In this document: piece after piece, positions 10,213 to 56,919 of the stretch
Layout of the letters: each line of letters starts with the position of its first letter
Numbering within the stretch: position 1 is the stretch's first letter
DNA from: Penicillus capitatus
Lineage: Eukaryota > Plantae > Chlorophyta
Length of the DNA: 64,000 bases
Assembly: GCA_965649825.1 (NCBI GenBank)
Contig: OZ287704.1
Location: 360,101 to 424,100 of the forward strand
Direction: 5' to 3'
Made by a program: the position numbers and the translations under genes
The notes under the pieces: model-generated
Told to the model about the DNA's origin: nothing
Databases searched by the model: none
What the model saw: only the letters and a program-made list of their open reading frames with translations

Positions 10213-12970
10213 ATGCGGACGCTTTTTCGCAACAACTCGTTCGGAAGCCGCCTGTTAGCAGGCTCAGCCTCTTTCTATCTGAGTGTCATCGGCTTTCTCG
10301 TCGTTCTCTTGGTCTTCTCGGTACAGTACTCTTTCAGGTAGACAACGTCGTTCTCCGACAAAGCAGCCAGCCACCCGCGTTATCCTGTCTAGGTTAAATA
10401 ACCAAATTGAACGACTGCACTGGCAGCTTGCTCTTTCGCAGCTGCTTCGTTCTGTCTCGCCGCCCGACAGACCACAGACTCTAGACGCGCAGACCCAGGC
10501 GGAGAATGTCGTTCTCATTAAAGATGCGGAGATTCATTTGCAGAACCTCCAAGACCATCTGTCAAAACTGTTCGCCACATACAGCCCACAGAACTCTCCT
10601 GATGCGGCATGTCCTCAATCCGAACAAGTCCAAGAAAACGAAGAGGCGACCACTTTCCCAGTTTTACGTGGTTTAGTCGCAATGAGTCTGTTGGTCGTGG
10701 CTGCAGCAAGTGTCTATTTTTGGCACAACATGGATCAACTGTCCGAAAAAGCGCCCATGCCTATCGCGGAGTTTTTTGGTCTTACCGAGAATCCACGACG
10801 GTTTTCAGAGGTGTTAGCGTACAAGGCCGATCGTTGGTTTTCCACGAATAAGCATGCCAAAGTCCTTGCACTCCTATTCTTTACTTTATTACTTGTGGGA
10901 GTTGGTAGCCTTGCCCTTTTCGCTGTCAGTAACGCATCAATGTACGAGGCTCTCTGGAGTTCTCTTGCCGGGGTCGGTGTTGACTGGACATTCTCGCAAG
11001 ACTTTCATCTGCCAACAGGCTTCAGTTCTGTCATCGGCCGCATCGTTTCGATGATCATCAGTCTTGGTGGACTCTTAGTCACTGCTCTATTGCTGAGCAT
11101 TGTATCGGGTAAGCAGAAGTGCCTTGGCAGTTTAACCTCATGTAGCTGAACGTAGAGATCATCAGTGAAAAGGTCGACGAAAGGAAAAAAGGCACATCAG
11201 ACGTTCTCGAATCGAATCATACGCTCATCCTTGGATGGAGCGATGAGATGATGCCCATACTGAGGCAGATCTGTTTGGCCAATGAGAGTCTTGGCGGTTC
11301 TCCCATCGTGATTCTTGCCGAACGAGAAAAAGAAGAAATGGACGAAGAAATCGCACGAAATGAGATAGAGTTTAAGGGATCGCCCGTGATCTGCCGATCA
11401 GGAAACCCATTGTTAAAGCATGATCTTGACAAGGTCAATGCCGAACTCTATCAACCTCTCCTGCAATGGTCTGTGCAGGTCTCTGTACATTCAGCGCGGT
11501 CGATCATTGTACTTGCTAATCAACAATCTCCAGATCAGAGCGATGCTCGTGTCTTGAGAATCGTTCTGAGTCTTGTTGCTTTTCACGAGACTGGGGGGTT
11601 GAAGGTGGTCTGTGCAGCCTCCATCTGATATGCGTCTGTTCATCTAATAGCTGTCTGTTTGCAGGGATACGTTGTCGCGGAGTTGTGCGACATGGACAAC
11701 GAACCATTGGTGAAACTGGTTGGAGGTGATCTGGTACAGACAGTGGTCTCTCACGACATCATTGGACGTGTCATGATCCAGTGTGCTTTACAACCCGGTC
11801 TTGCTGGCGTCTACGATGAACTCATGGGTTTCGAAGGCTGTGAGTTTTACTTTCAACAATGGCCAGAACTAACTGGCAAGACCTTCTATCAAGCTCTTCT
11901 CAGTTTTCCCGATGCTGTCCCTATTGGCATCAAAGAAGCAACCACTGGGGACATCAAGATGAATACAGGAGACGATTATGTGATTCAAGAGGGAGATCAA
12001 CTCCTTGTCTTAGCAGAAGATGATGATACATATAAACCAGAGACACCGATGATGATCGAACCTGGTGTCTGTCCGAACGAGGAGGAAACGAAGGAGATAG
12101 AGAAGATCCTGTTTTTGGGATGGCGACGTGACATGGATGACATGATCATGGTGCTCGACACTTTTGTGGCTAAGGGCAGTGAGTTATGGCTCTATAATGA
12201 AGTGCCTGTCCGCCAAAGAGAGCAGTTACTCATCCAAGGCGGACTGGATCCAGAAAACGGTCTCAAGAACCTCGTCCTCCGATACAGAGACGAGAATCTC
12301 GAGGGCGATCTCATCACCAGAAAGAAACTGGAAGCATTGGATCCAGCATCGTTCTCTTCGATTCTGGTCCTGGCCGACGAATCTGCCTGCGGAGATGACA
12401 TTGCCGATGCCGACTCGCGAAACCTTGCAACGCTGCTTCTGCTGCGCGATATCATGTATAAAGTGACGCGGACAGAGTGTGTCCCTACCGTCGGTGCCAA
12501 CATCCAACAGCTCAGGGCACTGTCTATGGACCATTCCAGGACCATCATTGTCAGTGAGATCCTCGATGCCAGAACGCGCAACCTCATCATGCAGCTTAAT
12601 ATCTCTGAGTTTGTTATGAGCAATGAGATTGTTAGCATGGCACTGTCGATGGTAGCAGAGAGCGCCGATGTGAATCGCGTCTTGCAGGAGCTTTTCAGCG
12701 AAAATGGCGCAGAACTCTATGTTCGCCCTGCACAGAAGTATATTCGACCCAGTACACCTCATTCGCTCTTTGTCCTCTGTCGTGCGATGTGTGATGTCAG
12801 ATGAGGAGATGACTTTCTATGAGTTGCTCGGACGCAGTCGACTGCGTCAGGAGATCGTCATCGGTTACAAACCGCGATCCAATCGTCAGACGATCATCAA
12901 TCCGCCCGATAAGGGCAAGAGAAATCTCTCCGTGCGCACCGTGGATAGTGTCATCGTTCTGGCAAACTAA
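10213..12970 (+). CDS. CASTOR/POLLUX (DMI1)-family cation channel, multi-exon
   Basis: TM/pore region followed by RIVSMIISLGGLL, ISEKVDERKKG.SDVLESNHTLILGWSD, LANESLGG, EREKEEMD, VICRSGNPL, VVSHDIIGRVMIQCALQPGLA, FEGCEFY, DADSRNLATLLLLRDI, IVSEILDART, SNEIVSMALSMVAE. The first exon (ATG 10213) is inferred through a GT-AG intron at 10338-10392. Confidence 0.92.
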
Positions 12971-13472: not shown

Positions 13473-16002
13473 ATGGAACTCGAGCCGTTAATTGCGAGTC
13501 CACTCGGAAAGCCACGGAGTCCTTCGGCTTTTAATCGTGGCTCCTCTTCGATAGCGTCGCCAACTGCCCGGTCGCCAAAAAAACCGACATCAGTCAACCT
13601 CGAAGGCGGTGACTGGCTTTTAACAACGTTACTGATCACTTTGGACGCCGTTCTGGTAACTTCGCATCAGAGCGCATGTCTTCCGACAATGCATGTCGTG
13701 TCTTAGTTGGAGTTGTATAAGAGTGAAAACACGCGCTGGGCGACATTTCTCACATGGTTCGTTCATTACGAGTGCGGCAATGGATGGGTTTGCGAACTGC
13801 TCAATACTCTATACATTATGGCTGTCGCTGTTGCCAATGTGACTCTTCTGATTCCTGTCATCAATGTGAATGTCCGGACACCATCAAGAAGAACGTGGAG
13901 GGGATGGTTGGTGTTTGCGTGGGCCGGTCTGCTTTTAGTCGATGCCATGACCGTCCTGCAGGTTCAGGATTCCATTCGGAAATGCATGAATAACGAAGAA
14001 GAGGATGTCGACAGCTGGACAGCACATTTCTGGTTGATAGGGATGGCTCTCGTCCTGGCGGTGGCATTGAATATGCGTTTCATTTACCTCTATGGCTGCT
14101 TTACATGCATGACCTGTAACGAAGACCGTCTGCTCCGCAAGAGAGAAGGGCTCCGTCAGATCTACATCAATAGCAATCGACGTCGTCGTGAGCACAGCGA
14201 AGCACGGCAACAGATGCATGCAAATGCGCAATCTCTGTTGAACGGTGCGTATTCACGCGTCCCAATACGCACTGTCTGACTGCTCTGCTGCAGTGGTTCG
14301 GGCTCCTCAGCTGCACAGGTTCAATACGGGCGAGTTTCTGGAACAGGTGGCCACCGGTTTCCGGCAGTTCGTTGGCAGAAAAGTCCGTTTCGTGCGGACC
14401 ACCAATTTGAACATTGCTCGTGGGGAATCGGTCGATAGCAATGCCGATTTCCAGGAACACCTGAATCGTCTACTGGATGTCGATTACCTGACGTCGTGGA
14501 AAGGTTACATCGTGGGGAAAGTGAAGCAGATGTATACAGAAGTGGCAGAAGTGGAAAACTGTTTCGAGTATTCTTCCTGGATCAAAGCCGCCGCCATTTT
14601 TGCTGTTCTGATGCTAATCTACAACTGCATCAAGACGACAGAGATTCTGTTTAATCTGGCTTCATCCTGGGACGACTATCATAACTTGGCTGTTCGTTTT
14701 CAGGACAGCCTGTCAAGCACGAGGGACACACTGGGCGACTTGGATGAAAACCTAAAAGCGATACCCGATACGACGACGTCCTATAACGGAACGGTCGCTG
14801 CTGTGGCCAACGAGACGTTGCCATCTGTCGTGCAAAATATATCGCAATTGCAAGGAATCCTGGGCGAACTTGACAAGGCCACAGGGAGTGCGTATGATGT
14901 GGCTGGAGTGATGTTGGACGTGGCCCTGCTAACAACTGCCACACTTGTCAACATTACAGATCTTGAAGATAACGCCGTTGTGGGCGCCTTCTACTACATC
15001 GACAGTATTATTCCGATCCTCAGATACACCTGCATCATTGGCTATCCGATTGGCACATTGATCGGTCTGCATTCACTCTACCAAGTCCTGGTCCAACATA
15101 AGAGAATGAGTCTGGCACTGGAACAGGCTTTGTCGGCCAGAACGCCACATCTCATGGGAAAACTGGACGTTGATGAAGAGGATGCACGGGAGACGCTGTT
15201 GGGAATCGATAAGAAATACGAAATCGGCGGAGCTGTGTATTTTTTCGGCATCTTGATGAGCACAGCCGTTGTGCAGCAACACATTTTCGGCTTCTCTGTC
15301 ACCATCTTCGTCGCTATGATCATCAACGTGAAGAATTTTGATGTGTTGCTCAACATTGGAGGCTACCTCGTCTTTGTGTATCTGACAGTGATGATCACAA
15401 ATCTCTTTCTGACACATATCATCGGTGATCGCCTTTTGACGAAAAGAGGATTCCAGATACAACATCCATGGCTTTTCTTTCTCTATCTCTTCACCTTTTC
15501 AATGGTCCATGCAGTTTTGGGATTTCTTTATGCATTGTGGCGAGCCCTGTTGCTGCTGGTGACCACTTTCTGGGTACTCAATCGATTGGACGTCTCGCTG
15601 TTTTTGACTGGGAAGCAATTTGACAATGGTCATTACTCTTTCATGTCCATGCTTCTACTGACAAGAGTCATTCGACTGACCAACATTGCTCAAGGACACA
15701 TCCAAGCACCGAACGGCCAGAATCCAGATGCCTTATCGGAATCCAGCCTGTCAGGAGATTTCTCCTCTCGTCTCGGCAGTATAGATCCGAGTGAAGAAGT
15801 GTCTGCTGATGGAAATGCGAATGGAGATGGCGAGATGAACATCGCCTCCCCGCCTGCGCCTGTTTCCTTTAATCCAGAAGCCACGACTGCACCCAATGGG
15901 GAGATCGAAGCGGGCAACGATACAGACCTTCCGCCTCCTTCTGTTGACCGTGAAGATATCTCGATTTCGGTGCGCGGAGAGAACCCTGGACCATCTGTCT
16001 AA
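13473..16002 (+). CDS. STRA6 / RBP-receptor-like multipass membrane protein (3 exons inferred)
   Basis: Many TM helices. The C-terminal block GFLYALWRALL...LNRLDVSLF...FDNGHYSFMSML matches the recalled vertebrate STRA6 block GAMVATWRVLL...LGQMDLSLL...LDPGYYTYRNFL. AVVQQHIFG matches STRA6 LLVQQIIFF. Confidence 0.7.
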
Positions 16003-16674
16003 GAACTGTTACGCATTCGTTCGATCCATCATTGCTTTGTAGAGAACAAAGCTGTTTCGGCAGCATTGCCTCTTCCAATTGTGCCATCCACCATTTGACC
16101 GCCATGCAATGAACGAGCGGGCATAGATAAATCGGGAGCCTGTCCTGAGGGACGGCACCATAACTCGACAATGTATGCTTCTCCTTGACCGATTACTGGG
16201 TGATGTTGTAAGAATCCTATCAATGATGTGTCCCCACACAATGATCACGTCATTTCGCAAGACACGCGATGGGACAGCTATTTGCGTATCACGATCGCGT
16301 TAGCGGAGACGGATTCGTTCGTCATCTCATCGACGACAGAATTCACTCACATCACGCTTCTGTGAATGCTGCTTCTAACCGTCGCGTCTTTGCTCTCGAC
16401 GGTGACTCCGTTCGGCGTCTTTAGACGTCAGAAACAGAGCAAGCATTAGAATGACGTCGATGTCGACGTGTCCCATGAGATGTTACCCATCTTGCATAAC
16501 AGTACTTGGAAGAGTGATTGGACGACGTGAAGATTGTCGTCGTCCGTGCTTGTGGTGTTCGTGGTTTTGTGGATGGCGTATGACGCCTGTCCGTCTGTTT
16601 GTTTGTCGTCAGTGGCTGAGACATTTGTGCATTAATCGCGTCACCCATTGATTTCTGGGCTCCATTTTCCTTCT

Positions 16675-18424
16675 ATGCTCACCGCGTCGCTACCTCACCT
16701 TCTTTCTCGGTTGAACGATGTCGAGTTCGACCGGAAGACCACCGGGATCCTGGCAGGGTCCGTCTCCGTGGTCTGTCTCGCCGCCTACAGTTATCGCTGC
16801 TATCGACGCGCTGTGAAAAAACGATCTCGTCTTCTGCCGCCATCGACGTTACCTCAAGACGCCTACGATGCCGTCATCGTCGGCGCTGGACCTGCCGGTT
16901 CGACGGCGGCGTGGTTTATGAGTCGTGGCGGTGGCCGAGTCGCTCTGCTCGATAAAGAAAAGTTCCCCCGTGACAAGTACTGTGGGGATGCGGTCTGTAC
17001 GCCGGCGATCCATATCCTCGAAGAGATGGGGGTCATGTCGGTATTGAAGGAGAAAAATGAAGTGCATTTCGCTAATGCGGGAGGATTTGTGAGTCCCCAT
17101 GGCTATTGCTATATCGGCGCCACAGAGAAACGCCTCGGCGAGGCAGCTGCCTGTGCCGTCAAGCGCATTCATTTGGATACACGTCTGGCTAAACATGCAG
17201 AGAAAGCAGGAGCCGTTCTGCGTGAATCCTTTGAAGTGGTGAACGCCGAGTTCGACAAATCGACATGTCTATGGAGCGTCACATCATCGCAGGTCTCGCC
17301 ATCTGAAGGATCTGTCAGATGAAGGGATGGGGATCGGAATGGTGCAGGGAGAGATCGTGAAAGGACGTGTGTTAGTTTGTGCAGATGGTGCCACATCAAA
17401 ACTGGCAACGAAGCTCGGCTACTGTACCGAACCGCCCGAAGGTATCTGCAGTCGAGCCTATGTCAAGGGTGGCACCCACAATGCCAAGTTCGATGGTGCG
17501 AGATCTCTCCTCTCTTCCATCGCAGCGTCTTCTCATATCGGCAATTGTATGTGTAGGCGTGTGCTTCTACCCAAAAGAGACGCTTCCGGGTTACTTTGCC
17601 ATTTTCCGACATCCTAACGAAGAGCTCAATCTGTGCTGCTATCTAATCCCGAGTGGCAAGAAGGGATGGTGTGGCAACGTCAGGGTATGAGTTGAGGGGT
17701 GTGATGCATGCTGTGTGATGTGACATGTCTGTAGGAGTCCGATTTGGCACGGCTACATAACGATGCGATCGAGAACGATCCGTTTGTCAGTCGAGCATTG
17801 GGTCCGACACCTGACATCGAGAGAATGAAGGCGTCCTCTTTGAGAATTGGAGGACAGGGGATCAAACAGAGTTATGATGATCATCTGTTGATCATCGGAG
17901 ACGCCGCGGGTCACATCGATCCTTTAACAGGAGAGGGAATTCACACAGCCATGATGGGGGGCAAAGCGGCAGCCGAGACGCTTTTGGAAATGAAGAAGTC
18001 TGGCGACTATTCGGCCGAGGCGACGCGATTGTACTACCACAAATGGATGAAAGCCTACGGCCACGACTTCGGCATGGTAAACATTCAGATCACGTCACAA
18101 AATGCATGAGGCGTTGTGTGTCCAGTCCCGCAAAGCTGCCAATCTGGTATTCCGTTATCCCATCGTTTTAGACGCTCTTGCCAAAGAGACCGAACGAAAA
18201 GGTCGCCATCCATTGCCACGTGTGATGTGACGTGTGAGATCTCGGTCGATGCTGTAGGCGATGAATTCTTGGCGAGGTATGCCGAGGTGATGACTTGCAT
18301 GCGTCCCAAGTCCTATTTCCTACGGCCAGATGTGATGCTGCCGATGGGGTTCGCTGTTCTCCGAGAAGTCATCAATCAAAAGATCTTTGGGAGTCCATCG
18401 CAGTACGTACGTTCGGCAAAGTGA
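16675..18424 (+). CDS. Geranylgeranyl reductase-family FAD-dependent oxidoreductase with N-terminal membrane anchor, multi-exon
   Basis: YDAVIVGAGPAGSTAA (Rossmann fold), LLDKEKFPRDKYCGDAV, VCADGATS, LLIIGDAAGHIDPLTGEGIHTAMMGGKAAAE. Confidence 0.88.
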
Positions 18425-18530: not shown

Positions 18531-19209
18531 ATGACGACGCATTGCGCGATCCGTGACGCCCGGTGTGTCGTAAGAGGGTCAGCAAGTCGCCAAGAAGGTC
18601 TTGTGACGACATCGACCATCGGGCGTTATTCGGGGTTTCGTCGCATCGACGGCGTTGCTCCTTCACGTCGCTCAACGGCACACATCGAAAAAGTGTGACA
18701 TGACAGGACATGATACTCTCTCACACATCTCTCCGCACAGGGACGTCTGCCTTTAGAGATCCAATGCGTTCGCGTTGCCAATGTCGAAATCCCCAATCAG
18801 AAACGCATCGAGTGTTCGCTGACGTATATCTACGGCATTGGTTTTCCCACAGCACGGAAGATTCTCAAGGACACGGTGTGCTGAGAAGATCCATACCCCA
18901 AGATGTCTTGCCGATCCTTATATGCAGGGAGTAGAGAACAAGAGGACATATGAGCTGTCTGATGAGGAGCTGGTGACTGTGCGTGAAGAGGTGGATAAAT
19001 ACACCGTCGAGGGTGATCTTCGGCGCAAAGTCCGGGCCGATATTCAATTGCTCAAAGACATTGGGTGTTACCGAGGGCGACGCCACTCCATGGTCAGATC
19101 GTCCTTCGATTCCTAGCCTTTCTCTATGGCGGCGGAGTTTTAGGGTCTGCCTTGTCGGGGACAGAAAACGAAGACGAACGCACGAACGCATAAGGGTCGG
19201 CGAGATTAA
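18531..19209 (+). CDS. rps13: Organellar (plastid-type) 30S ribosomal protein S13 with transit peptide; 3' end uncertain
   Basis: [55 protein letters not shown] assembled across introns. Confidence 0.9.
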
Positions 19210-19474: not shown

Positions 19475-20823
19475 TTACGTCACATAGATCTCCTTTACAC
19501 GTTTGATATAGTCCGCCTTTTCGAAGCATCCCTCACAGGAGACCCCATGTTCCCTCAGGATCTCTTTCAGCTGCGAGGCAGTCAGTGCTTCGATATCCTT
19601 CACAGAGCTGATGTGAATCTGCTTATTGCATTTGCGTCCAGCGGTGAAGGTATTGAGAAATGTCCGAATGCGATCGGGCTGCATCTTCTTTGTAAAGGGC
19701 TCCGTCGTCTCGCTCTTGCCATTGCACACAGCGATCAGCGACGGATAGGATGTGACATTAAACTTGGGAGCCAGTGAAACGACATTCTTCCCCTGGACCT
19801 CCCCAAATAGGATGCGCCCTTCGTACATGAAGGCAAGACTCTTGTACAGGGCCGACGTCACTGTCTTCTCTGTAAAGAGCAGCATACAGACGCGCCACGA
19901 TGCCTTTCCTTTCCCGCCACTGCCACATCGGGTCAAGAATTCGTCCAGCTGACGGGGCTTGGAGATCGGTACGACGTGATCGGGAATGAGTGATAGGGCC
20001 CATCTCTGGAGATTCTTCGATGTTCGATCGCCGTCGAACTCGACGCCGCGTTTGTTGCCTCCTGTCCAGAAGGCTTTGATTGTTGGGTAGCCATCGATGT
20101 CGTGTGTACGACACAGACGCTCGTGCTTGTCGCAATTGACAGCCAACACTTTGACGACGCCTTGCAGCGTCTTTCCGAGAGCACTCCATTTGGGAGAAAG
20201 CGATCTGCAATGCCCACACCATGGGGCATAGAATTCGATCAGCCGTACCCAACCGAACGTATCTTCATCGAAATTCTCATCCGTTAGCTCGTGCACGTAG
20301 GGATCGTCTTTGTAGAAATCTTCTGCCTGTCTCCGTTGTCGCTGACCAAATCCACCACCACCACCTCCTCCTCCGCCGCCAAACTGAAATCGGAATCCAC
20401 CGGCACCGTTTCCCGTTTCTTCGCCAAAGACCCATTCGAAAATGCGATCGGCTCCCTGAAAGTGAAATCGCTGTCCGCCACCTCCACCGTTGCCGCCTTG
20501 AAATGCCGATTCTCCGAATCGATCATACTGGGCACGTTTTTCGGCATCCGACAGCACTTCGTATGCTTCACCAATTTCCATGAATTTCTTACTAGCTTCC
20601 TCCTGATTGGCCGGGTTTCTATCCGGGTGCCATTTCCTACACAGCACCTCTTTGCCCATACTCGAAACGGCGTTCCATACATTGCTTGTTTCTTGTAGGC
20701 GCGCTTAATCGTGGCGTCGTCGGCATCGGTGTCTATACCCAGAATATCATAATACCGTCTCTCTCGCACCGCTTCGCCCAGTCGAATGGTCCACAGAACG
20801 CAAAGAACAACGAAGAATCGCAT
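19475..20823 (-). CDS. ER DnaJ-thioredoxin co-chaperone (ERdj3A/TMS1-like): signal peptide, J domain, Trx WCGHC, Trx-like domain, C-terminal SAP/ARMET-like module
   Basis: [18 protein letters not shown] signal peptide, YYDILG...[40 protein letters not shown]. Confidence 0.88.
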
Positions 20824-23620: not shown

Positions 23621-25423
23621 ATGGACTACTCGGATACCTATCTCGACTCGCATTCCGACAGAAGCTCGCTCTATGAGATAGACGACGACACTTACAACGG
23701 CATTGCCGTGGAGTCGATGGACGAAGACAACTATTTCGACGATGACGACGTCGTTGCGCCACGTCGTGAAGCGCCATGGGATATCATCTCACCCGACAAC
23801 ATTCAACAGCACCAGGTATATCCTCCATAATACCCCCCTCTGCCCGACGCTGAAACGCACTGATTTGGCAGACGGAAATGCTCGGGGAGGTGGAGGAAGT
23901 CTTGGCCTGTGGTGCGGGAAAGGCACGCGTCTTGCTGATAGAGTACTGCTGGGACAAGACTCGACTGATGAGTAAAACCGCGTCGTGTATCCGAACAGAC
24001 GCCAATCGTTGGAGCACTGTCTGTAGATGACTACGTGGAGAAAGGTCGTGAATTCGTCTTCCGTCGTTCTGGGTGTTCTGTTGGGGAGAGCTCTGTGATG
24101 CCGCAAGAGAGTGAGAGAGCAATTGGAAGAAATGATGTGACAGATGTGCATATGTGTGCGTAGAGGTGCTAACCTGCGAATGCTGTTTTTGTCCCACGCG
24201 CAGAGAAGATGGAACTGTGATGTCATGTGGTCATTGGTTTTGCAATGAGTGTTGGATGGGACATTTCGAGGTGCAGATCCGCGAAGGCAACTCATGTCGA
24301 CTAAAATGCATCGGCTATAAATGCGGTTGCATCTGCGATGAAAAAACTGTGCGAATACTGCCTGCCTACTAGGGTCGTCATGTCTGATCTCACTCTTCTG
24401 ATGTAGGTTCTGAAATTGTTAGAGAAGCGAACAGATTTGCTAGAGCGCTATCAGCGAGCGCTGCTAGAATCGTATGTGAATGATAATGGCCATGTGAAAT
24501 GGTGCCCCAGTATCCCCAATTGTGGCAATGCCATACGTAACAATCGTGATGAGTGCTGCGAGCCTTTGTGCACATGCGGTCTCCATTTTTGCTTTAACTG
24601 TCTTTCTGAGGCGCACTCTCCCTGTACCTGCGAGATGTGGTTGGCATGGGAACGCAAGAGAGTGGACGACAGCGAAACAATGAACTGGATTACTGCCAAC
24701 ACGAAACAGTGTCCAAAATGCCACAAGCTGGTTGAGAAAAACGGCGGATGCAATCTCATGACATGCCGTTGCGGACAGCATTTCTGTTGGCTGTGTGGCG
24801 AAGCGACCGGGTTCGAACACACATACAACAGTATTTCCAACCATCAGTGTGGTCGTTGGAAGGATGAACTGGTAAAGAATATCGACGAAGCTGCCTTTTA
24901 TCACAAACGCTATATGCATTACTTCACACGATGGACTGGTCATCGTGACTCTCTCAGACGAGAGTCTGCCGTCAAAGAAGAGACCATTACTCTGCTCAAG
25001 AACTGGTCAGATACCTTGCAAAGACCTGTCGTGGAGTACAACTCACTGATTGGAACAGTGACGGTACTGACGACGGCACGAAGAGTCTTGTCCAACAGCT
25101 ATGTCTTTGCGTTTTTTCTTTGCGGAAAGAACTGGTATGCAGACGAAGTGCATCCAGAACAGACGTCCTTCAATCAACCGCTGTTTGAAGACATGCAGCA
25201 GCAGATCGAAGCAGAAGTTGAACGGCTATCAAAGCTGCTGTCCAAGACAGAGCTGGAGCCGGATCAAGTGCGAGAACATTTGGTGGAAGTGCTGAACTGT
25301 GCACGCATGGTATTACGTCGCTTGCAGAATTTCTATAATGGGATCAATTCTGGACTGCTCGGACAGTTGGAGCAGTCCGTGATCTCCATTTCAGATTTTA
25401 TGCCTCACAATCTCATCATTTAG
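23621..25423 (+). CDS. ARI: ARIADNE-class RBR E3 ubiquitin ligase, multi-exon
   Basis: Acidic N-terminus, RING1 (CECC...CGHWFCNECW...C...C), IBR (VKWCPSIPNCG...CTCGLHFCFNC...HSPCTC), RING2 (KQCPKCHKLVEKNGGCNLMTCRCGQHFCWLC), Ariadne domain (RYMHYFTRW, RRVLSNSYVFAF). Confidence 0.95.
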
Positions 25424-25552: not shown

Positions 25553-27652
25553 TCACACCCCATGATGAATCCTCGCCAAAAAAGACAGAACACGTGTATT
25601 TACGGCCTCCGGAGTCTCGTCGTGTCCACAGTGTCCGGCCTCTATCGTCTGGACGTCGATATGAGGACACAGTGCTTTTAGACGTTGCGCTCGATCTGCT
25701 GATTTGCTCAGGGGATCCAACGTTCCTTGAAGGAGGAGAACAGGGCGGGTGTATTTTTCAGACAGGAGATAGTTCAGAGGCTCTGGCTTCTTGAGAAAGA
25801 AGACGCTCTTGATGATCGCAATGGCATTGGGATCGTGTGATGCTCTGAGAATTTCGTCGAGAAAGGCCTGATCTGCGTGGCTTTGTTGCACAGGGTAGAC
25901 GGATTTTAGAATCCTCCCAGCCGATCTTTTCAAGTAAAACAGCAGAAGTTGACTTAGGATATCCACCAGGAAGGCAGGCAGACGCCAAGGCAGGACATCT
26001 GCCTGTCGGGAATCGTCGTTGGGGGTGTAGTCCTCGATTAAGGGACCAGCGGGGTTGATCAGAACGAGACCGGGTACAGCTTCGGGGTGATTGGCGGCAG
26101 TCTGTGCGGCCATAAACGCCCCGATGGAGTTTCCAGCCAGGACAGTAGATTCTCTTACGACGTCCGAAATGAAAGCCCCGAGAAATTCTGTCCACAGAGA
26201 TTGCGAGTATTTCATATAGAGTTTTTGTGTCCGGCCGAAACCGGGTAAGGTTGGGCAATAGACTGTGTAGCCGCTAGCTGTCAAGGCATCGACATTGCGC
26301 CTCCAATGCATGCAGGAAGCTCCAAAACCATGCACCAGCACGATGTGACCCTTGGGGGAAGAATCCTTAGGCTTAGAAACAGCAAACTCTGCCAGAAATC
26401 CTTGCCATCTCCAGAACCGTTTGACAGAGGATCCTGGAGTACTCTTGCAACCATTGCGCAGAACCTCCCGAGCCAGATAGCCATGAAAATCGAAAGATTT
26501 ACTGGAGAAGAGAGCCGCTTTCGACAAAGCATTCTGCCGCCCTCTCAGTCTTTCTTGCACTTCGCACACCACTCGACGAGGAGAAAGTATTCCCAAAGAG
26601 AGTGGAAGAGCAAAGAGCGAAGAGAACGAAATCCCAGGAAAGCTGCTATCCTCTGTAGTTAACATCATTTGTTGCAGCGTATTGTTTTCTGAACATTTGA
26701 CTGCGTAAGATGAGGCATCCAGGTATCGCTGAAGCCAACGAAGAGGCGATACTTGATCTGAACACAGATGGCTACTCCACTGTTGCCTTAGATCGATCGG
26801 ACAACTGTCGAGAGGATCGCTAAGAAAGACGCCATTCTGAAAATCCTTCTGTCTCGTTTGCATTAGTATCTGTTTCAAGTCATCGATGTCTGGAATCCGA
26901 CCATCCTTGTCGTGTCGTTTGTCCAAGTCAGCGGAAGGTAGTCTAGATGGAGGAGAGAGAGGCTTTTGGAGAGACTCTGTCCTCTGGATGTCTTTGAACA
27001 CTGGATCATAGTTTTGAGAGGAATACATTTGGCACGTCCATTCTTCGATGGCAACTCCTGGAACAGTTGCTTTGAAGTGGTCGATCGACTCCTGCCAGAT
27101 GATATCGACCTCAGTTTCTATCAGAATCGTTCGCGTTCCAATCTCCGTTACGAATTGGGCCAACGTCTCTGGAAAACTCCCGATACGGACAATCAGATAG
27201 CTATCCATCGCCATCAATGACTTCCTGAGAGAACAAAGGGCGCTGTGCAGCAACTCTACGCCGCCAGGGATGCGAAGGTACGAAAAGTAAAGCTCAGGAT
27301 CGAGGATGCATAGCGGAACAGCCGATCGGCCGCTTTGCAAGACGCGATGCAATCCGGGATGATCATCGACTCTAAGATCATGTTTGAACAGCAACACGAT
27401 CGGATGCGACACTTCAGTCGATGCATTGCGACACAGAGATCCTGAAGCAGGTCCTTCCACGTCAAAAACGGCTCGCGGTCCATGGAACACCTGCCGAGTA
27501 AGCCATCCACGGGTTCGCCGTCGTCGACTTATGCTCAGACATGCTGTGGTATGTTTTGAGACAAAGCTCCCTCTGTCGTTAACTTTGCACTCGATGGGCG
27601 GGCGTGAAAGATAATACGGCGATTGCTTCGTCCACGAGGCTGAGAGGAGCAT
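25553..27652 (-). CDS. Photolyase N-terminal domain fused to an alpha/beta hydrolase (plant/algal fusion family), single exon
   Basis: IVLLFKHDLRVDDHPGL (photolyase N-terminus). The C-terminal hydrolase has LVHGFGA, PTLPGFG, GNSIG nucleophile elbow and AGHCGHDETPE. Confidence 0.88.
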   Translation of the reverse strand: MLLSASWTKQSPYYLSRPPIECKVNDRGSFVSKHTTACLSISRRRRTRGWLTRQVFHGPRAVFDVEGPASGSLCRNASTEVSHPIVLLFKHDLRVDDHPGLHRVLQSGRSAVPLCILDPELYFSYLRIPGGVELLHSALCSLRKSLMAMDSYLIVRIGSFPETLAQFVTEIGTRTILIETEVDIIWQESIDHFKATVPGVAIEEWTCQMYSSQNYDPVFKDIQRTESLQKPLSPPSRLPSADLDKRHDKDGRIPDIDDLKQILMQTRQKDFQNGVFLSDPLDSCPIDLRQQWSSHLCSDQVSPLRWLQRYLDASSYAVKCSENNTLQQMMLTTEDSSFPGISFSSLFALPLSLGILSPRRVVCEVQERLRGRQNALSKAALFSSKSFDFHGYLAREVLRNGCKSTPGSSVKRFWRWQGFLAEFAVSKPKDSSPKGHIVLVHGFGASCMHWRRNVDALTASGYTVYCPTLPGFGRTQKLYMKYSQSLWTEFLGAFISDVVRESTVLAGNSIGAFMAAQTAANHPEAVPGLVLINPAGPLIEDYTPNDDSRQADVLPWRLPAFLVDILSQLLLFYLKRSAGRILKSVYPVQQSHADQAFLDEILRASHDPNAIAIIKSVFFLKKPEPLNYLLSEKYTRPVLLLQGTLDPLSKSADRAQRLKALCPHIDVQTIEAGHCGHDETPEAVNTRVLSFLARIHHGV

Positions 27653-28879: not shown

Positions 28880-30598
28880 TCAATCGAAACGATCCTCTGG
28901 CAGGAGTAATAATGGCTCATCCTCATCGGCGGATGTATCAGTTGTAGAAGTGGAGTTATTCGAATCCTCCTCCGAGATATAACCCCTGCCTGAAACTGGC
29001 ATATTGATGCAATTCTCCAGATCTTCATCGTCTGAATGAAAGGTCAGTGTGACGATGCGCAGAAAGACGGAAGCTGGCGTCACGAATCCGTACTTTTCGA
29101 CTCGAATGTTCAGCAATAGCAGCAATCCCGTAAGAGCCAAACAGAAGAACGAAATAAAAGGAGCTCTGGGAAAGTAAAACTCTCCGAGACGAAAGAGGGC
29201 AAAGAGCGAAGCATGGAAGAGAGGGGACAGGCCTTGAGCCAAGGCACGGACCCCTAACACGGCTTGATGGACTATAAACGAACTAGAGGAAGTACTGTGG
29301 TGATCAATGACACGATAGATCATCACAGTGATCAAGGCATCCATTGACCCAAACACCTCTAGAAAATAGGCCAGCATCTTGGACTTCACAAAGATCATGC
29401 CAAACAGCTTCACTGCCACCATGACAAATCCAAATCCAAAAGCATCTTTGTATGTGCGATTGCTGAAAAGACTCCAGAAAGGAAAGATGATGCTGTAGAC
29501 GAGCGTGACGACCAAGAAACGAATCATGAGGAAGGTTGACTGCTCCACCGTGCCAAATCCTGCGACTTCTTGAAGATACTGTAGCTCCAGCTCAGAATCT
29601 CTCTGCTGGATGAGTTCAAAGACCGCATAGACCAGGATCACGTTAGTCAAGTTAGGGTTCTTCGGCAGACGCTGAAAGGAGGCGTACATGTCTTCAAAAG
29701 GGCGAATCCAATGGAGATATGTCGTCCGACGGAGATTGTTGTGTGCATCGCCGGCTGCTAAGAAGCTATTCAGACTTGTAGATGGCGCAACAGATTCCGG
29801 CAGAAAAAGAAGACAGAGCAGTAGCGCTGTGCCAATCAATGCCAATAAGATAATGACTGCGTGCTGGACATCCTCTATTGCCTTGCTGGCCACCAGCATC
29901 GATCCCAAGAAAGAAGAGAAAGCGGCCAGAGTGAGATATGTCCAATACACCATGTCTGCTGACGACTCGTCGATGAGGTCGGCGAAGTACGATTGGCAGA
30001 GAGAAGGCAATGCGAAAGACAGTTCCCAAGCTTTGCCCACATAGTACCTGCACATCCAGACACACTCCTTATATTCAATCGGCAGGCGTCTTTAGCCGAA
30101 TGCTCACCAGTAGAATGGCAGGTTTGTTTGAAGGTGGAGAAGGAGGAGGACTGGTGGGATCAATGCATTGAACAGTGCAAGGAGGAGAAACGGTTTGCGT
30201 CCATAGATTGTGCTATATCTCTGAATGCAGGACCCGAAGACAATCGACAGGAAGAGCCGTGATATAAAGAGCTTCCCAGCATCGAAGAAGACAGCCTGAT
30301 TATGTGCTTTTTGGCAGATGTTGTCTCTTTGCTTTATTTCTTCTGCCTGATCAACGCATAAGTGCTTTTGGTTAGTCTGTTCCGAGACAAAGTATTCAGT
30401 GGACATGGTCGGAATAAATCCCCCTATGAGACCCCACCCTGGTCACAGGTACTTTGCGTATGACCGATTGCACGACGTTTGGCAGAGCGTACCAAAGTGC
30501 GTCAATGAGAGAAAGAGCATTAGCAGATAGGCACGTTTCTGGAGCATTTCGCGGACAAATCTGCAGAGAAGCCGTACTTCACTGCGTGTTAACGACAT
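28880..30598 (-). CDS. Major facilitator superfamily transporter (SLC46/HIAT-like), multi-exon; start approximate
   Basis: Motif A region YSTIYGRKPFLLL, FADLIDES, about 12 TM helices, acidic C-terminal tail ending in a dileucine-like EPLLLL. Confidence 0.8.
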
Positions 30599-35000: not shown

Positions 35001-35098
35001 GAGCGACCACTGTTGGTTGTTGTTCATGTCAATTTTTGAAGAACTGTTAGAAAAGCATTAGGTGTTCGATCAGATTTGTTTTGTCTCACAGATTATGC

Positions 35099-35800
35099 TC
35101 AATCGGCATCCCATACCAAAACTTCTTTGTGAAGAAACTGCCACATAGATACCCTTTGATCAAATGTGTTGTCGAATACGTTCGAGAATTCGATGAAAAA
35201 ACTTCTGCACCGTTTCCGAACTGCCATACGCCTCGTGCAGTGCCTAAACACAGGAAGCGTCCATTCATGCCTGTTGCATGGAGTGTCTTGCCGTTTCTTT
35301 CTGATCGGATGTGTCAATGGCCTGCAGAACAGACCGAAGACTCTCGTCCTTCAACATCTCCCTTATCTCACTATCCGCCACTGCAGATAGAGAGACCTTC
35401 ACAAAGATACTCATGCGATGGACACATCCCACCTACCCAATGCTTCGTAGTGTTGCGGTTTCAGAAGCCACTCTTCGTCCATCGTTTCCTGTTCCCATCT
35501 CGGTACTTCATCTTCGCGTTTCTTTTTGCATGGAGCAAGGCAGACGCAGATTCGCTCGATGGCATGACTCTCTTTGTGCCGCGCCACACAACGCACGAAA
35601 CCTTCGAAGGTTACGTTTGGATGGTAGGCATCGAGGGCTCCACTCGGCAACGTTCCAACGCGAACAGTCGATCTCTCGATCTTCAGCACGGCCTCAGCCT
35701 CACTGCGCTCCACCAGAATCTTATCACCCGGTCTCGGGTGAGCGAGCGATGCCGGGTCGGTTGTGTCGAGGATGATATCAAAGTTAAAACGAGGACGCAT
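35099..35800 (-). CDS. Hypothetical protein: N-terminal beta-rich (HIRAN-like?) domain plus ZNHIT3/HIT1-like C-terminal helical domain, 3 exons
   Basis: Spliced product ...EEWLLKPQHYEAL|VADSEIREMLKDESLRSVLQAIDTSDQKET|ALHEAYGSSETVQKFFIEFSNV resembles the ZNHIT3 C-terminus. The second intron is GC-AG (35244-35291). Confidence 0.55.
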
Positions 35801-35812
35801 GATTATAACACC

Positions 35813-37915
35813 ATGTCAGCATTCTGGACACTCTTGCTGTGGCTCTCTTGCGTCGCTGCTTCGACTGAACATGGTCTCCCGTCGACGACGCTACCTGCTA
35901 CATGGTTCTGGGGAGATGTCGATGGCATCAACTTTCTGACGCGAGTGCAGAACGAACGTGCACCGAGGTGTGTGAATCTCTTTCTGCCTTATGTTTGGCG
36001 AAGAACGTCGTCGATTGGACAGATACTGCCGAGCGAGTTGGGCACTCTCGACGGTCGCGGCTCTCTCCGACCGTTTAAAAATTTCGAATGGTGCTCAGCA
36101 TCCTGCTCCATCTTTATCCCCTCAAGTCCTCCTCAACTGCGTGTCTGCCACTTCAAACTGCTCTGTGCGTTTTACGTGACTGAGTCGTTCGCATGGAGTA
36201 TATCCGTTTGTTTGCAAGGGTGGGAATCCAATGGATGCACTAGAGTACATTTCGCAGGTGGGTATCCCTGATGACACGTGCGAGAACTATGAAGGCAAGG
36301 AAGGCGTCTGCGATGCCATTGGCATATGTCGCGACTGCGGTCCAGGCAACGTGTCAGCAGGAGAAGTCAATCACCTCCATTTCGGATGCACTCGAAACGT
36401 GCATTACAGGATTTCTTGGATGGGCATTGCATTGCCATCGACAATTTTCCGCTGTATCGACTGGAGGCATATGGTGATCTCAGAAGAAATGATGAAACGA
36501 AGAGGGTGCATTCGATGACGGAACGGATGAAAGAAGAGATCTACACTAACGGATCCATTACGTGTCGCATTCAACCCTCGACAGAATTTGTGAACTACAA
36601 AGAGGGTATCCTCTCCCCCTCCTCCCCCGCATCAGCATTGTCAACAAGTGAGGCTCATTTCATTAACGTCGTGGGATGGGATGCGACAAGTGACAAAAAG
36701 TGATCTTCGCTTTACATAATATAACTGGACAGCGGTGTCATGTTTTGAGGTTTTGGATTGGGCGGAATTGTTGGGGAGAATCGTGGGGAAATGGCGGTTT
36801 TGTTCAGATCGAGATGGGCATCAATGCGTTCGGAATCGAATCGCATTGTTTTTGGGGCACTATTGCTCCATCGAGATCATCCAATCAGCGTCCGAATGGC
36901 GATGTCAATGAAAAAGAGGACGATCACGGCCCTTATCAAATCAGCAGAAGCCGTCGTTCACATGGTCCCTGTCGCTGTGCGATGGATATCGAGGGACTGT
37001 CTCTACCTTACCGTCTACCTCGGTCACATGTGGAGAATGCTGATATGCCACAGTCGTACGATATTCGCAGTATCGACGGCCGGAATTATGCTGTCATGGA
37101 CAAGAATCAACATCTCCCTGTGTACTGTGGATCGTGTTGGGCCTTCGCTGCCGTCTCCGCATTAGCCGATCGATATGCCTTGCTTTACAAACAAGATGCT
37201 CCACTGTTTGACTTAGCCACTCAGGCATCGCACTGATGGAATGTACGCTAACGTCTGATCTGCACATTTGTGATTCAGGTGGTCATCAATTGCGCCGAAG
37301 GGACGAAAGGTTGTCGAGGTGGGCTGCCTCACTTTGCCTATGCTTACATTCAAGAACATGGATTGCCGCATGAGAGCTGTGCCCCTTATCAAGCGATCGA
37401 TCAGCCGTGCACTTCGATCAACATCTGCAAAAGCTGTCGAGAAAACGGCACTTGCACAGCTTCGTCGGAAGAGACCTTTCGACATTTTAGCGTCGAGGAC
37501 TACGGCGTCTTTATCGGAGAAGAGAACATGAAACAGTTGATCTGGAGCGGAGGACCCGTTGTTTGCCTCGTCTCTTATACTTCGGAGCTTCATATGTATT
37601 CCGGAGGCATTTTTAACGACACCACTGGCAGACGGTCCTTCGATCATGTCGTTGAGGTAACAGGCTGGGGTACAGAGAGTGGAGTGGACTACTGGATTTT
37701 CCGTAACAGGTGAATTCGACATCTCGCACTGTTTCGATTGATAGTTGTGTGGTGATAGTTGGGGGACCTACTGGGGTGAACAAGGATGGGGACGGATTGC
37801 CATGGGTCCAGGGGATCTTGGGTTGAGCAGTCTACTGTGCAGTTGGGCAACGCCGAAGCCATTCACCACAGCACTGCCTTACCAGACATTCTCACGCCGA
37901 CAGCAAATCGTTTAG
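35813..37915 (+). CDS. Secreted two-domain cathepsin Z/X-like (C1A) protein B: inactive domain followed by active domain, multi-exon
   Basis: Signal peptide MSAFWTLLLWLSCVAA. Domain 1: NERAPRYCRASW (Gln to Glu, Cys to Ser), AHFINVVGW, RNCWG. Domain 2: NQHLPVYCGSCW, DHVVEVTGWG, RN|SWG. Stop TAG 37913-37915. Confidence 0.85.
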
Positions 37916-47070: not shown

Positions 47071-50000
47071 TTACGTCGGGACGTCGGGCAGGCTGTTTGC
47101 ATCGTCTTCGATCGACCATTCGTCTGATGACGATGTCCAGCCCTCACCCTCTTCGAGATCGCCTGAATCGCTGCTTTCGCTCTCTTCCGTCTCCGATATG
47201 GGTTGGATCTCTGACATCTCCGTGGCCGTTCCACTGACTCCCCGTTCAATTCCCACACTAGAGACTCGGGACCGTGTAAGTGTGGAGAAAGAGTTGGCGT
47301 TTTCGATGGCTTCCATGACGAAGGCAAAATCATCTCTGTTCCGACTGGGGGAGCTGCCGGGTTCCGTCTCGAAAGCGTACATGATGGGAGGCGGCATTTG
47401 AGGTAACGGCGTCTGATCTGCTTTCTTCCGAGTCTTTCCTTTCTTCTTCCGATTTCGCTCTGGTTCTTTTTCTTTCCTCACTAAACGCCATACAGCAAAG
47501 ATGGTGGATGCCACGGCGAAGGCGGCGACAATCGAGAGCGTGTAAGCCAGCCAATGAGGCGTCTCGGTTTGCGAACTGGGCAATTGCGTCTCATGCGATC
47601 GTGCTTCATCGTTGTCGTAACTCTGCCTCCTGCAATCTCCTTCTGTTAGTTGTTCCCGACATTCTTGTACATTATATGGCAGCAATCCAATGCGCTGCAG
47701 CGTCTCCGCGTTTGTCTTTTTCAGTTGCTGCACCCAGTCCGTCGAACACACCCCGTCCGAACCGTTGAAACTTGTATGGAGATGTGGATGTGTCCATAAA
47801 CACGTTTCCTGTTGCGAACATGCCTCTTTGGACTGCATGTTTTCACAGACGGGTAAATTGAGATAGGCTCGACAACTGTCCGTTTTGGCAGAAAGCCCAG
47901 TTATGTTCTTATCCTAACATACACAATGACACAAAGTATTGGATGGCGTTTGGAGTAGGCATGAGATGACTTACTTCTACAAGGTAATTCATAAAATTGG
48001 ATGATGGTCTGCATTTCAGGCGGCCTTCGATGTCGAATAAGTCACACCGTTCATCCAATCTGCACTCCACTGTTGCCAAAGACGGACAGTAAGCAGTCAA
48101 GATGTAGATGTCTCTGGTGTGAACGACCATCGTCTGAAACACATGTTCCGGCAGATCCTCGAAAAGGTGCTTGATCGATGTTGGATTTTCCTCTGGAACA
48201 CAGATCTTATCGAAGTCCGCGTTGTTGCCATAGTATTGTCCTGTCGTATTGTTCCAGTTTTTGATGCCCGATAGTTGACACTGTGAACGGTCCGTGTTTC
48301 GACAGTTGCCACTCTCGTCCATGCCCAGTTCCATGCAGCCAACTAAGGACAGAAGGTAATCCACAATATTTACGTCTCCGAATGGATTCTCTTCTGTTGC
48401 ACTGGTCAAATGATTGGCCAGTGCAAACTTATTCCAGTCAGCAATAACATTCAGAGCAGCTTCCATAATTGACAGAATGGCTGTGGCTTCTGGTATTGCA
48501 TGAGCTGCCTTGCTCCAAAATACTTTTGCATCGATCATGTTTATGGTGGCTTCCAATAGGCCAACGATTTTGTCCGACACCGTCAACAAGTTATCAAATT
48601 TCACGAAATATGATTTCGCAAGGTTCTCTGTGGCTTGACTTCTTGCTTCGTCGAGTTTAGCAGCTGTAATCTGTGGACCGTTCTGCCAGATGTACAGACC
48701 ATCGAGATTGAGCAGTTGTTCTGGTAGATTCCGAATCTTGTACCAGTCCGTGGCATGTGTCGCTGTCAGAGCACCGACCAAATCTGCCACAACATTTCCG
48801 AGGGCGGACAGGGTAGGAACGGTCGTGTCTGATACGTTGGGAGAGCGCGTACGATAGAGACCCTGCACAAGCTCGACAATATGTGTCCCGGCTTCACTTC
48901 TGGAAGACACCAATTCCTGAATAGCCCTCCATTTCTGATTACGATCGCCACACAGACGCACCCATGTCTGGTTGTATTTTTCTGCAAAGCGGAGGTTTGG
49001 ACTTTGTGGATAATGTGGAGCTTGTGGATAGATGCGTTCGAGTGCTTCTTCAAAAGCGGCGACAACAGCAGAGACCAGCTTATCCAGGGTGTCGATCACG
49101 ACATATGAAGCTTCCTCGTCACCAGTCTCCTCGTGTCCTTCGCTCCTCTTAACCGCGTCTAATCGTTCTTCCACTCCATCTAGGCGCTTGGATTCCCTTG
49201 ATATCGTTCTCGGATTCCATGTTTCGCGTGATTTACGGAAAACTGTCGAAAGCGTTTTGACGACGTTCGCCTTTGTCTGTGACACGTTTTTGTTTGAAAC
49301 ATAGGCAGCATCCAGGAGCTCAGCGCTTTCTTGAAGCATCCACCATAAGGTATTGGAAGCATTCCACGTCTCCTGGCTGACGCTCTTATGCATCTGACTA
49401 TCGAGTCGAAATCTCATGATTTCCAGTTCCTCTGCGGCAGTGGCAAAGTGCTCTTCTGTCGCAGCGATGGGCCGAGGCTCGCTTTCCAACACGGATGTTA
49501 ACGCATCAAGTATTTCCTGCACGAACACACAGCTGAACTCGACCCTCATGGCCTTGGTGCATCACGCACGCACCCTGACGTCTTTCAAACCGACAGTGAT
49601 AGAGGCATTTGCCGATGTCAGATGGTCTGTCGGTGTTCCTAACTCAAGCGGCTTTCGGATCCGCTCCTGCAGAGTCTCTATCGAAGAATCTCCATCGTTC
49701 TTCGTCGATTCATCTGAATGAGGCGTCAGATTGGCGGCGACATCGAAGATCAGTTGGCCTTCTATGGGTTTTGACTGTTCGTCTTCCGACGCCTCTGAAT
49801 TCGAATTCTCTTCACTTAACTGAGGAGGGGCTGCGTTCTCTAAGGACAGCGAACGTCTTTAACGACAAATGACGTCGAGTGCACAATGGCACCTTCATCG
49901 AGCGCTTGTTTTGCATCCTCCTTCTCCCCGCCAGTACTCGATGATCCTTGTCCTTGAATCCGTGTCTCCTCCTCGTCCACAATGGAGAAGTTGGTCGATG

Positions 50001-55514: not shown

Positions 55515-56919
55515 TCAAAGGGCGACATCGCTTTCCAGCTTCAGATAAGCATTCTCTCCATGAGGACGAAATTTCATACCGACGGTGACATAGAAGGCAA
55601 AGGTCGCCAGCTCGGATGCCAGTTTGCTTGCCCACTTGTAGTTGTAAGGCAATGTGTTGTCCAGGAGAAATACGATGATTCGGGTGAAGTAGATATAGAC
55701 GACGACCAGAACATAGAACTGACGGAAAAGCGTGAGCTTCTCCACATTGGACGCCGCTTTGCCGTCGGATTCTGCTCCTTCCCGAAGATGCTTGATCGAC
55801 CAGACGATGGGAAAGAGAATAGCACAGCAACAGATGATATCGACCAAGTGCAGCAAATCCGACAAAGTCACAAACGATGTTCGCGCCGGCGATGCTTCAT
55901 CCAAGATAATGATGGCAATATTGGCAAAGATCTAACACAAAAGAGTGAGATTGTCTATCGTGTGAAGTGTGACATTACCTGAAGAGGAATGACAATCACT
56001 AGGATCTTCTTTTCGTTCTCGCCGATAAATGGACGTAGATACGACCATCCCGTCCCGATCAAGACAATGACGACAAAGAACATCACACCTCTGAGAAATG
56101 TGAAGACGTAGTATGCCACATTCCATCCTTCTGGACTGCCCGTCACTCGATCATCGTGATACATTCCGGCAAGAGTAAAGTAGACGACGGAACGTAGCAC
56201 CACCAAGCCAAACATCAGATAATGAATACCGTGGACATGACGACGCTCGGTATAGCACACTTTAGCCCACGTCACTGCCAAAGCCGAAAACGCCAAGAAC
56301 ATGAACTACGGGCAGTCAAACATCGGTGCATGAAAGAGAACACAGTGGCACGGACCAAGTAGATAGTGGGCAGTGGACGTTCTCCGATCGACAAGAAGTC
56401 CTTCTCGTTGTTCGCTCCTCTGTTATACATCGAGATGCGCACATTGCATTCAATGCCGACCGTTTTGTTGCAGTTTGCAAAGAAGAGCACATAATCGCCC
56501 GGTTTCAGCTGCTCATGTTCGGCGAATTTGAGATGCACCGTCATGTCTTCTTTCTGATCGTTAACTTCGATCCATTTGCTGAGATCGATGATCTTGGTCA
56601 TCTGGTTATTGGTTGCATCTTGAAGAGAACATCCGCCGCCTTCATTTTCTTTCATCTCGACGTGCATTGGTGGTGTTGCCGACACCGGTGCCAAGAAAAA
56701 AGCGAACTGTGACAATCGAATTTCCATTTTCTCTTTGGGTCCATAGGCCGCGAGGTTGGACACCGACAGTTTAATTTCGCCGGTCTTGTCGAAGCCGAAA
56801 GGCAACTCGACCGGGTAGTGGTCACGCTCGTCGAGACCGATATGCCGATGCGTCACGCGGCATTGGACCGCGCACAGACACAGACACGCGTAGATAAAGA
56901 AAGTGACACCAGCTTTCAT
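55515..56919 (-). CDS. GPR107/GPR108 (lung seven-transmembrane receptor; plant CAND6/7-like), multi-exon
   Basis: Signal peptide, PFGFDKTGEI, YVLFFANC, FLSIGERPLPTIY, GSPEGWNVAYYVFTFLRG, IVLIGTGWSYLRPF, DIICCCAILFPIVWSIKHLRE, KLTLFRQFYVLVVVYIYFTRIIV. Confidence 0.93.

Follow-up and report, generated by a model that had tools for sequence, protein, structure and literature searches.

A predicted STRA6-type C-terminal module in a membrane protein family of chlorophyte algae

STRA6 and the C-terminal module of the Penicillus protein

STRA6 and its paralog RBPR2 (STRA6L) belong to the retinol-binding protein (RBP) receptor family (RBP_receptor, PF14752; TCDB 2.A.90). RBP4 is a vertebrate protein, and we know of no RBP in algae. 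STRA6 is a dimer from which retinol leaves by a lateral window to enter the bilayer, with no energy input, and cholesterol has been proposed both in its cleft and at sites between its intramembrane helices (PMC12953553, PMC5954442). One paper calls it animal-specific (PMC5977736), and another presents it as a protein made "from scratch", without homology to other receptors or transporters (PMC3546623). Members of the family have been reported from sponges (PMC7743902). The literature that was searched contained no link between STRA6 and green algae. In this study, a gene on a 64,000-nt stretch of the Penicillus capitatus genome (assembly GCA_965649825.1, contig OZ287704.1, positions 360,101 to 424,100; hereafter the window) was analyzed. 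The gene lies on the + strand at window positions 13473-16002, and its predicted product is referred to below as the candidate. It had been predicted from the letters of the DNA that the C-terminal transmembrane (TM) block of the product follows the STRA6/RBPR2 pattern.

Judging from profile comparisons, residues ~536-701 of the candidate very probably have a common origin with the membrane module at the C-terminus of STRA6 superfamily proteins, and we regard the protein as a new, divergent branch of that superfamily in chlorophytes. All homology claims rest on two alignments, A1 (five close homologs) and A3 (a clean 42-sequence algal alignment). Both exclude P0069, an environmental eukaryotic protein of 777 amino acids (aa), known like its cluster members from JGI environmental contigs, which is a bona fide member of PF14752 (80.2 bits) and matches zebrafish STRA6 (5SY1) at 4.9e-12. 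Comparison of A3 with P0069 by hhalign gave a probability of 96.1% (E 3.5e-9) over candidate residues 536-701, covering 160 C-terminal columns; with zebrafish STRA6 residues 444-546 the probability was 92.1% (E 6.3e-7, score 51.4). Among the controls, the reversed STRA6 fragment reached 1.7%, and 40 block shuffles of STRA6, which keep its TM/loop pattern, did not exceed 8.8% (score 27.3). The C-terminal block was also re-aligned and used as a hidden Markov model (C-block HMM), with the HMMER filters off and Z set to the size of the PDB set. Zebrafish STRA6 was recognized by this model at E 2.2e-5 (27.1 bits), with zebrafish residues 413-545 placed against candidate residues 559-688, while P0069 was recognized at 2.7e-14 and a protein of Ancoracysta twista (P0094) at 7.5e-12. 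Because the match to 5SY1 needed the re-alignment and the disabled filters, 200 composition- and pattern-matched decoys were used for calibration; none scored above 3.5 bits.

A common motif, G-x5-WR-x13-RLD-x10-D-x-G, is present in the candidate and in STRA6. In the candidate it reads GFLYALWRALLLLVTTFWVLNRLDVSLFLTGKQFDNGHY (residues 650-688, window 15520-15636) and aligns with GVVLGIWRVVITALFNIVHLGRLDISLLNRNVEAFDPGY of zebrafish STRA6. The polar landmarks are identical (G650/G508, W656-R657/W510-R511, R671-L672-D673/R525-L526-D527, D684/D539, and G686/G541), with one one-residue indel, and zebrafish STRA6 has the same residue wherever the algal family shows near invariance. The predicted STRA6/RBPR2 pattern was thus borne out, both by the motif and by the scores (92% and 27 bits, as opposed to control values of at most 8.8% and 3.5 bits). 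The VQQ.IF feature, which had been placed after an aromatic helix, was recovered as well, as VVQQHIF of the helix at 551-584, inside the aligned block.

The top match in a Pfam scan of the candidate was RBP_receptor (PF14752), at a sub-threshold 14.1-14.5 bits (E 0.015-0.019), with residues 556-695 on profile positions 384-524 of 605. This was the sole Pfam family with matches in multiple members: in alignment A2, 18 of 44 sequences, or 17 of 43 when P0069 is set aside, matched at E<0.1, and always over the same region. The best algal scores were 19.5-21.4 bits, the highest belonging to P0047 (21.4 bits). In P0009 and P0047 the weak PF14752 alignment reaches back over a TM7-like helix, to profile positions 305 and 329. 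P0069 was retrieved by A1 at E 3.7e-6 against the whole library of 1.84e9 proteins, and blastp of the candidate against P0069 gave 2e-10; P0069 appears to be the bridge between the algal family and STRA6. A profile match to RBP_receptor had been put forward as a check, and it was obtained in part: the profile and profile-profile matches are significant, but the Pfam gathering score is not reached (14 vs 25 bits). Matches obtained with A2 (5SY1 at 4.7e-6; hhalign 99.9%) were discarded as circular because A2 included the bona fide PF14752 protein P0069. Matches to Abhydrolase_9_N (15-19 bits, below the cut-off), 2TM, YejM, and Borrelia Vlp were rejected as compositional or insignificant.

P0069 and P0094 are the closest bona fide PF14752 members to the algal family. 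P0094 (EukProt EP00164_P002465) is a 1354-aa protein with PF14752, Lipase_3, and Big_1 domains, and has "LD.GH" and "ST" motifs too. Both proteins pass the Pfam threshold and keep the BP3-like helix RW.LAYTL..NP, which corresponds to the STRA6 peptide crystallized with calmodulin in 5K8Q, whereas neither is true of the algal family. A match to the 5K8Q peptide was obtained for P0069, and the calmodulin-binding-type helix of P0094 reads RWHLAYTLLNNP. A regular expression search over 102 collected proteins found RW.LAYTL..NP solely in P0069, its cluster members, and P0094; among the same proteins, neither the candidate nor any algal member carries it. The calmodulin analogy of the original prediction therefore fails on sequence, even though the protist PF14752 proteins keep the binding helix. 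P0094 suggests an ancient lipid-linked, calmodulin-regulated role of the PF14752 family outside animals, and its Lipase_3 domain hints, though weakly, at a general involvement of the superfamily with lipids. That the STRA6 family predates RBP follows from its sponge and protist members. Since an apparent STRA6-type core occurs in chlorophytes as well as in bona fide protist members, the module would be older than RBP4 and animal vitamin A signaling, and an ancestral, RBP-independent activity would therefore be testable in simpler organisms.

Profile A1 was searched against 1.84 billion representative proteins and retrieved 78 with E<=1e-3, 58 of them with E<=1e-10. A word-indexed homolog search returned close relatives alone (5, 6, and 2 matches for three queries). 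All named family members are chlorophytes, labeled "hypothetical", "unnamed", or "uncharacterized", and no precomputed Pfam domain is recorded for family members. The green-algal origin that had been read from the DNA is supported indirectly by these taxa. Three paralogs were found in Caulerpa lentillifera (e.g., EP00210_P002992 and P003440), at least five in Ostreobium quekettii (e.g., A0A8S1J6A2), and four in Bryopsis sp. KO-2023 (e.g., GMH36341.1), a paralog expansion within the siphonous Bryopsidales. Family members also occur in Acetabularia acetabulum, Tetraselmis striata, and Tetraselmis sp. GSL018, and two very long ones (1,547 and 2,144 aa) in Edaphochlamys debaryana. In a rough neighbor-joining tree of the C-terminal block, the candidate groups with two Caulerpa paralogs and environmental sequences, and several paralogous subfamilies fall inside the Bryopsidales. 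Judged from the taxa of these homologs, the window most likely derives from a siphonous ulvophyte close to Caulerpa.

Gene model, predicted topology, and neighboring genes

As read from the DNA, the locus is an expressed-looking three-exon gene for a polytopic membrane protein of 809 aa, which belongs to a small unannotated family of core chlorophytes. The spliced coding sequence has 2,430 nt, with ATG at 13473 and the stop codon at 16000-16002. The gene is not one open reading frame (ORF); in-frame pieces are found at 13473-13706, 13707-14279, and 14245-16002. Exon 1 (13473..13655, +) codes for residues 1-61, comprising a basic Ser/Pro-rich N-terminus, predicted to be cytosolic, and the start of TM1; it ends at a GT donor at 13656. 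Its N-terminal "ME..(R)L(L/I)" and VNLEGGDWLLTTLLITLDA are kept in the homologs P0003 and P0004. Intron 1 (13656..13706, +) is a 51-nt GT..AG intron with an in-frame TAG inside, and its junction LDAVL/LELYK matches LDAIL/LELYQ of P0003. Exon 2 (13707..14244, +) codes for residues 62-240 plus 1 nt and, based on hydropathy, the AlphaFold2 (AF2) model, and the distribution of K+R, contains the end of TM1, TM2, TM3, TM4, and the start of a basic cytosolic loop; no family was matched significantly in this part. Intron 2 (14245..14293, +) has 49 nt (GTGCGT..CAG) and lies in phase 1; the junction SLLN-V-VRAPQLHRF matches SLLG-V-VKAPQFRRF of P0003. Exon 3 (14294..16002, +) codes for residues 241-809 plus the stop.

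The gene for P0003 (785 aa, 63% identity), which lies on a 2.7-kb JGI contig, has no introns. Over both junctions, the spliced product of the candidate gene is colinear with P0003 and with Caulerpa P0004 (783 aa), which has the same N-terminus, and these two homologs confirm the gene model. The N-terminal exons are present too in the 86%-identical locus L001, upstream of its called gene; a spurious 234-aa minus-strand ORF has been called across them (L001 5276-5980). The public models P0001 (569 aa) and P0002 (565 aa) are prokaryote-style calls of exon 3 alone. The database product P0001 is therefore truncated, the true product having 809 aa. No second copy of the gene was found in the 64-kb window, and an Rfam scan of the window gave no match.

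The structure was modeled by AF2 from 44 sequences, with a mean predicted local distance difference test score (pLDDT) of 72.4 and a predicted template modeling score (pTM) of 0.72; a run with 5 sequences was unusable (pLDDT 38.8). The topology proposed here, with a cytosolic N-terminus, is a prediction that fits the AF2 helices together with the distribution of K/R and of glycosylation sequons. Four AF2 helices, TM1 (residues 48-68), TM2 (88-117), TM3 (125-155), and TM4 (165-190), would form a family-specific 4-TM bundle; the helices of exon 2 have pLDDT 84-96. A basic cytosolic loop of ~140 aa follows (residues 191-334, 22 K+R). TM5 (residues 335-357, 14575..14643, +) is preceded by the invariant EVAEVEN.F.YSSW and is part of an AF2 helix at 335-395 (pLDDT ~90). 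From its place in the topology, TM5 is proposed as the positional equivalent of STRA6 TM6.

The insert that follows TM5 (residues 358-469, ~110 aa, 14644..14979, +) is probably extracytoplasmic. In the AF2 model it consists of an amphipathic antiparallel hairpin (358-395 and 404-436), a hydrophobic helix (440-458), and a loop with an invariant N460-I-T. Conserved hydrophobic residues occur at heptad-like spacing (L372, F376, L380, L387, L390, L394), and the segment is acidic, with few K/R. The extracytoplasmic exposure is supported by the enrichment of N-x-S/T sequons: the candidate has four of them in the insert and almost none elsewhere, and over 42 family members their density is 2.05 per 100 aa in the insert, as compared with values of 0.16 for the C-terminal block and 0.45 for the N-terminal part (5- to 13-fold). 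Among members, the insert can be as short as 40 aa and as long as 267 aa. Its position is that of the TM6-TM7 loop of STRA6, the proposed RBP-binding region, and no sequence similarity to STRA6 was detected there. An amphipathic segment had been predicted where a ligand-binding region would be expected; its helical nature, its probable exposure, and its place at the RBP loop hold, but its size of ~130 aa does not, as the quoted stretch (L372-G438) has ~67 aa and the whole insert ~110.

The next TM helix (residues 470-500, 14980..15072, +) contains GYPIGTLIGL, in which G490 is nearly invariant, and is followed by an invariant K510 (VQHKRMSLA); it is proposed as the equivalent of STRA6 TM7. A cytosolic loop (501-550) leads into the STRA6-homologous module (residues ~536-701, 15178..15675, +). 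The module consists of helix 551-584 (STAVVQQ), helix 586-622, a short basic loop (623-631), helix 632-669 (with G650, W656, and R657), R671-L672-D673, D684, G686, H687, and the start of an amphipathic helix at 685-706. One of the three C-terminal hydrophobic helices cannot span the membrane, because a cytosolic loop precedes them and a cytosolic C-terminus must follow. STRA6 has a horizontal intramembrane helix (PMC5954442). As the alignment is one-to-one, helix 551-584 is likely to correspond to it, and helices 586-622 and 632-669 are the likely equivalents of TM8 and TM9. The RLD segment, the amphipathic helix 685-706, and the tail would all be cytosolic. The C-terminal tail (residues 709-809, 15697..15999, +) is acidic, rich in Ser/Pro/Gly/Asn, and predicted to be disordered (pLDDT <50).

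A Castor/Pollux (DMI1-like) ion-channel gene lies upstream (11659-12804, +, probably with further exons from ~10283; Castor_Poll_mid E 7e-36), as it does in L001. Downstream is a multi-exon FAD-dependent oxidoreductase gene (16648-18400, +; FAD_binding_3), in which GDAAGHIDPLTGEGIH looks by eye like the geranylgeranyl reductase family; a putative isoprenoid or lipid transfer protein would then have an enzyme related to isoprenoids beside it. The adjacency of these genes is uninformative on function because synteny is kept only in a very close relative. Exons of ribosomal protein S13/S18 (18750-19200, +) were identified by synteny with L001, and an ORF with DnaJ, thioredoxin, and ARMET_C domains (19475-20659, -), which looks like a redox co-chaperone of the endoplasmic reticulum type, stands beside the gene cluster in L001 too. 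Elsewhere in the window are an Ariadne-type RBR E3 ligase (24416-25423, +), a 699-aa ORF with an N-terminal DNA_photolyase domain and an alpha/beta-hydrolase domain (25553-27652, -), a protein with the CAND6/7 (GPR107/108-like) N-terminal domain (56272-57066, -), and a trypsin-like protease (62271-63218, +). No Pfam match was obtained for the long ORFs at 28880-30055, 35081-36271, and 47909-49549.

Possible function and alternative explanations

The best overall explanation, and on balance a probable one, is that of a glycoprotein-like, polytopic chlorophyte membrane protein which combines a STRA6-type C-terminal module with a mechanism of the following kind. As in STRA6, the module would form a dimeric, lipid-exposed cleft, and the protein would probably act as a dimer needing no energy input. 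Through the cleft, a hydrophobic small molecule could move between the bilayer and a donor or acceptor docked on the variable hairpin on the extracytoplasmic side. Candidate cargoes would be an isoprenoid (a retinoid, apocarotenoid, or carotenoid) or a sterol. Lipid transfer itself, drawn from the analogy with STRA6, is a tentative proposal, and the use of RBP and a STRA6-style control by calmodulin are unlikely. In a broader form, the STRA6 transfer module would predate animals and RBP, and core chlorophytes, notably the giant-celled siphonous Bryopsidales, would keep a diversified family in which a glycosylated hairpin loads or unloads an isoprenoid or sterol at the bilayer; in this full form the proposal is rather unlikely.

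Several observations weigh against the assignment to the STRA6 superfamily or against a function derived from it. The PF14752 gathering score of 25 bits is reached neither by the candidate (14.1-14.5) nor by the family consensus sequence, which is still below threshold at 16.8. A default hmmsearch of the clean full-length A3 against PDB did not list 5SY1. The original prediction had called for a Foldseek comparison with the STRA6 structure, and this turned out negative: the full-length model (pTM 0.72) gave no match in PDB at E<1, and the 50 best-ranked matches did not include 5SY1, although a query that was whole-chain, all-helical, and uncropped makes this outcome not decisive. The demonstrably related part, ~165 residues, amounts to only ~20% of the protein, and when A3 was compared with P0069 by hhalign, nothing N-terminal of ~residue 536 aligned significantly with PF14752 proteins. 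The N-terminal domain is predicted to differ in the number of TM helices and its N-terminus probably faces the other side of the membrane. Neither the candidate nor the algal members have the calmodulin-binding helix, and the function is proposed by analogy alone.

A chance or compositional likeness of hydrophobic helices, with no common ancestry with STRA6, would explain the sub-threshold Pfam scores, the lack of a Foldseek match and of a default-filter PDB match, and the high bias terms reported by HMMER (~12 bits). It is nevertheless largely refuted and very unlikely, since three independent PF14752 proteins, from zebrafish, the environment, and Ancoracysta, were recognized at E 2e-5 to 3e-14 with none of them in the profile, since the 200 decoys stayed at or below 3.5 bits and the hhalign controls at or below 8.8% (vs 92-96%), and since the polar W-R, R-L-D, D, and G are conserved at nearly identical spacing. 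A relationship to Tweety-homolog (TTYH) proteins or to alpha-helical pore-forming toxin folds has a negligible probability and is not supported. SmhB/AhlB and TTYH3 are among Foldseek ranks 1-7, all with long extramembrane helical bundles, but at E 1.4-5, with probabilities of at most 0.16, TM-scores of 0.1-0.26, root-mean-square deviations above 25 Å, and no sequence signal. The toxin and TTYH matches were both rejected as noise; the TTYH family taken separately gave E 1.9-6, probability <=0.08, and TM-score <=0.18, and it had no Pfam or PDB sequence match. That the candidate is a functional orthologue of STRA6, a calmodulin-regulated receptor for a lipocalin-type carrier engaged in retinoid uptake, is extremely unlikely. 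The insert does occupy the position of the RBP-binding loop and the core motif is common to both, yet the BP3 helix is absent though conserved in protist PF14752 members, the sequence of the hairpin does not resemble that of the STRA6 loop, RBP4 is a protein of vertebrates, the N-terminal domain is different, and the candidate does not reach Pfam membership.

An alternative which retains the ancestry is that the STRA6-type module is ancestral while the role of the protein is not lipid uptake. The protein could act as a receptor in signaling or adhesion through its glycosylated hairpin, as a channel, or, in siphonous algae, as a factor of the cell wall or the wound response, with the helices serving only as a dimerization scaffold. 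The conserved part comprises solely the module equated with the intramembrane helix, TM8, and TM9, which may serve dimerization alone; hairpin length differs widely among members (40-267 aa); Bryopsidales genomes carry many paralogs, at least 3 to 5 each, as is typical of receptor-like diversification; and the cytosolic parts include a large basic loop and a disordered tail. We consider this role somewhat doubtful, as no signaling, channel, or enzymatic domain was found by Pfam, the sole characterized relatives, STRA6 and RBPR2, transport lipid, and a protist member carries a lipase domain.

If the proposed lipid exchange were true, algae would possess a previously unrecognized system for exchanging lipids or pigments without energy input, which would also shed light on what STRA6 did ancestrally. 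The homology itself would be a real, previously unannotated evolutionary link and would offer a first starting point for annotating dozens of algal membrane proteins now called "hypothetical". Its practical impact is modest until a ligand or a phenotype is found.

Comparison with known proteins

The named hypothetical algal proteins are true family members with 17-58% identity and have a common architecture from TM5 onwards; hairpin length and N-terminal regions differ among members. STRA6 has nine TM helices, with a five-TM N-terminal domain and an extracellular N-terminus, whereas a 4-TM N-terminal domain and a cytosolic N-terminus are predicted for the candidate. In place of the RBP-binding loop and lid peptide of STRA6, the candidate has the ~110-aa insert with its putatively glycosylated helical hairpin. 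It differs further in its ~140-aa basic cytosolic loop and in having neither the calmodulin-binding BP3 helix nor the SH2-docking Tyr tail. Like STRA6, it has an insert, probably extracytoplasmic, ahead of the proposed TM7-equivalent helix and a C-terminus predicted to be cytosolic. Homology between the two proteins is very probable for the last three hydrophobic helices together with the juxtamembrane segment, and in both a short basic loop lies between the last two helices.

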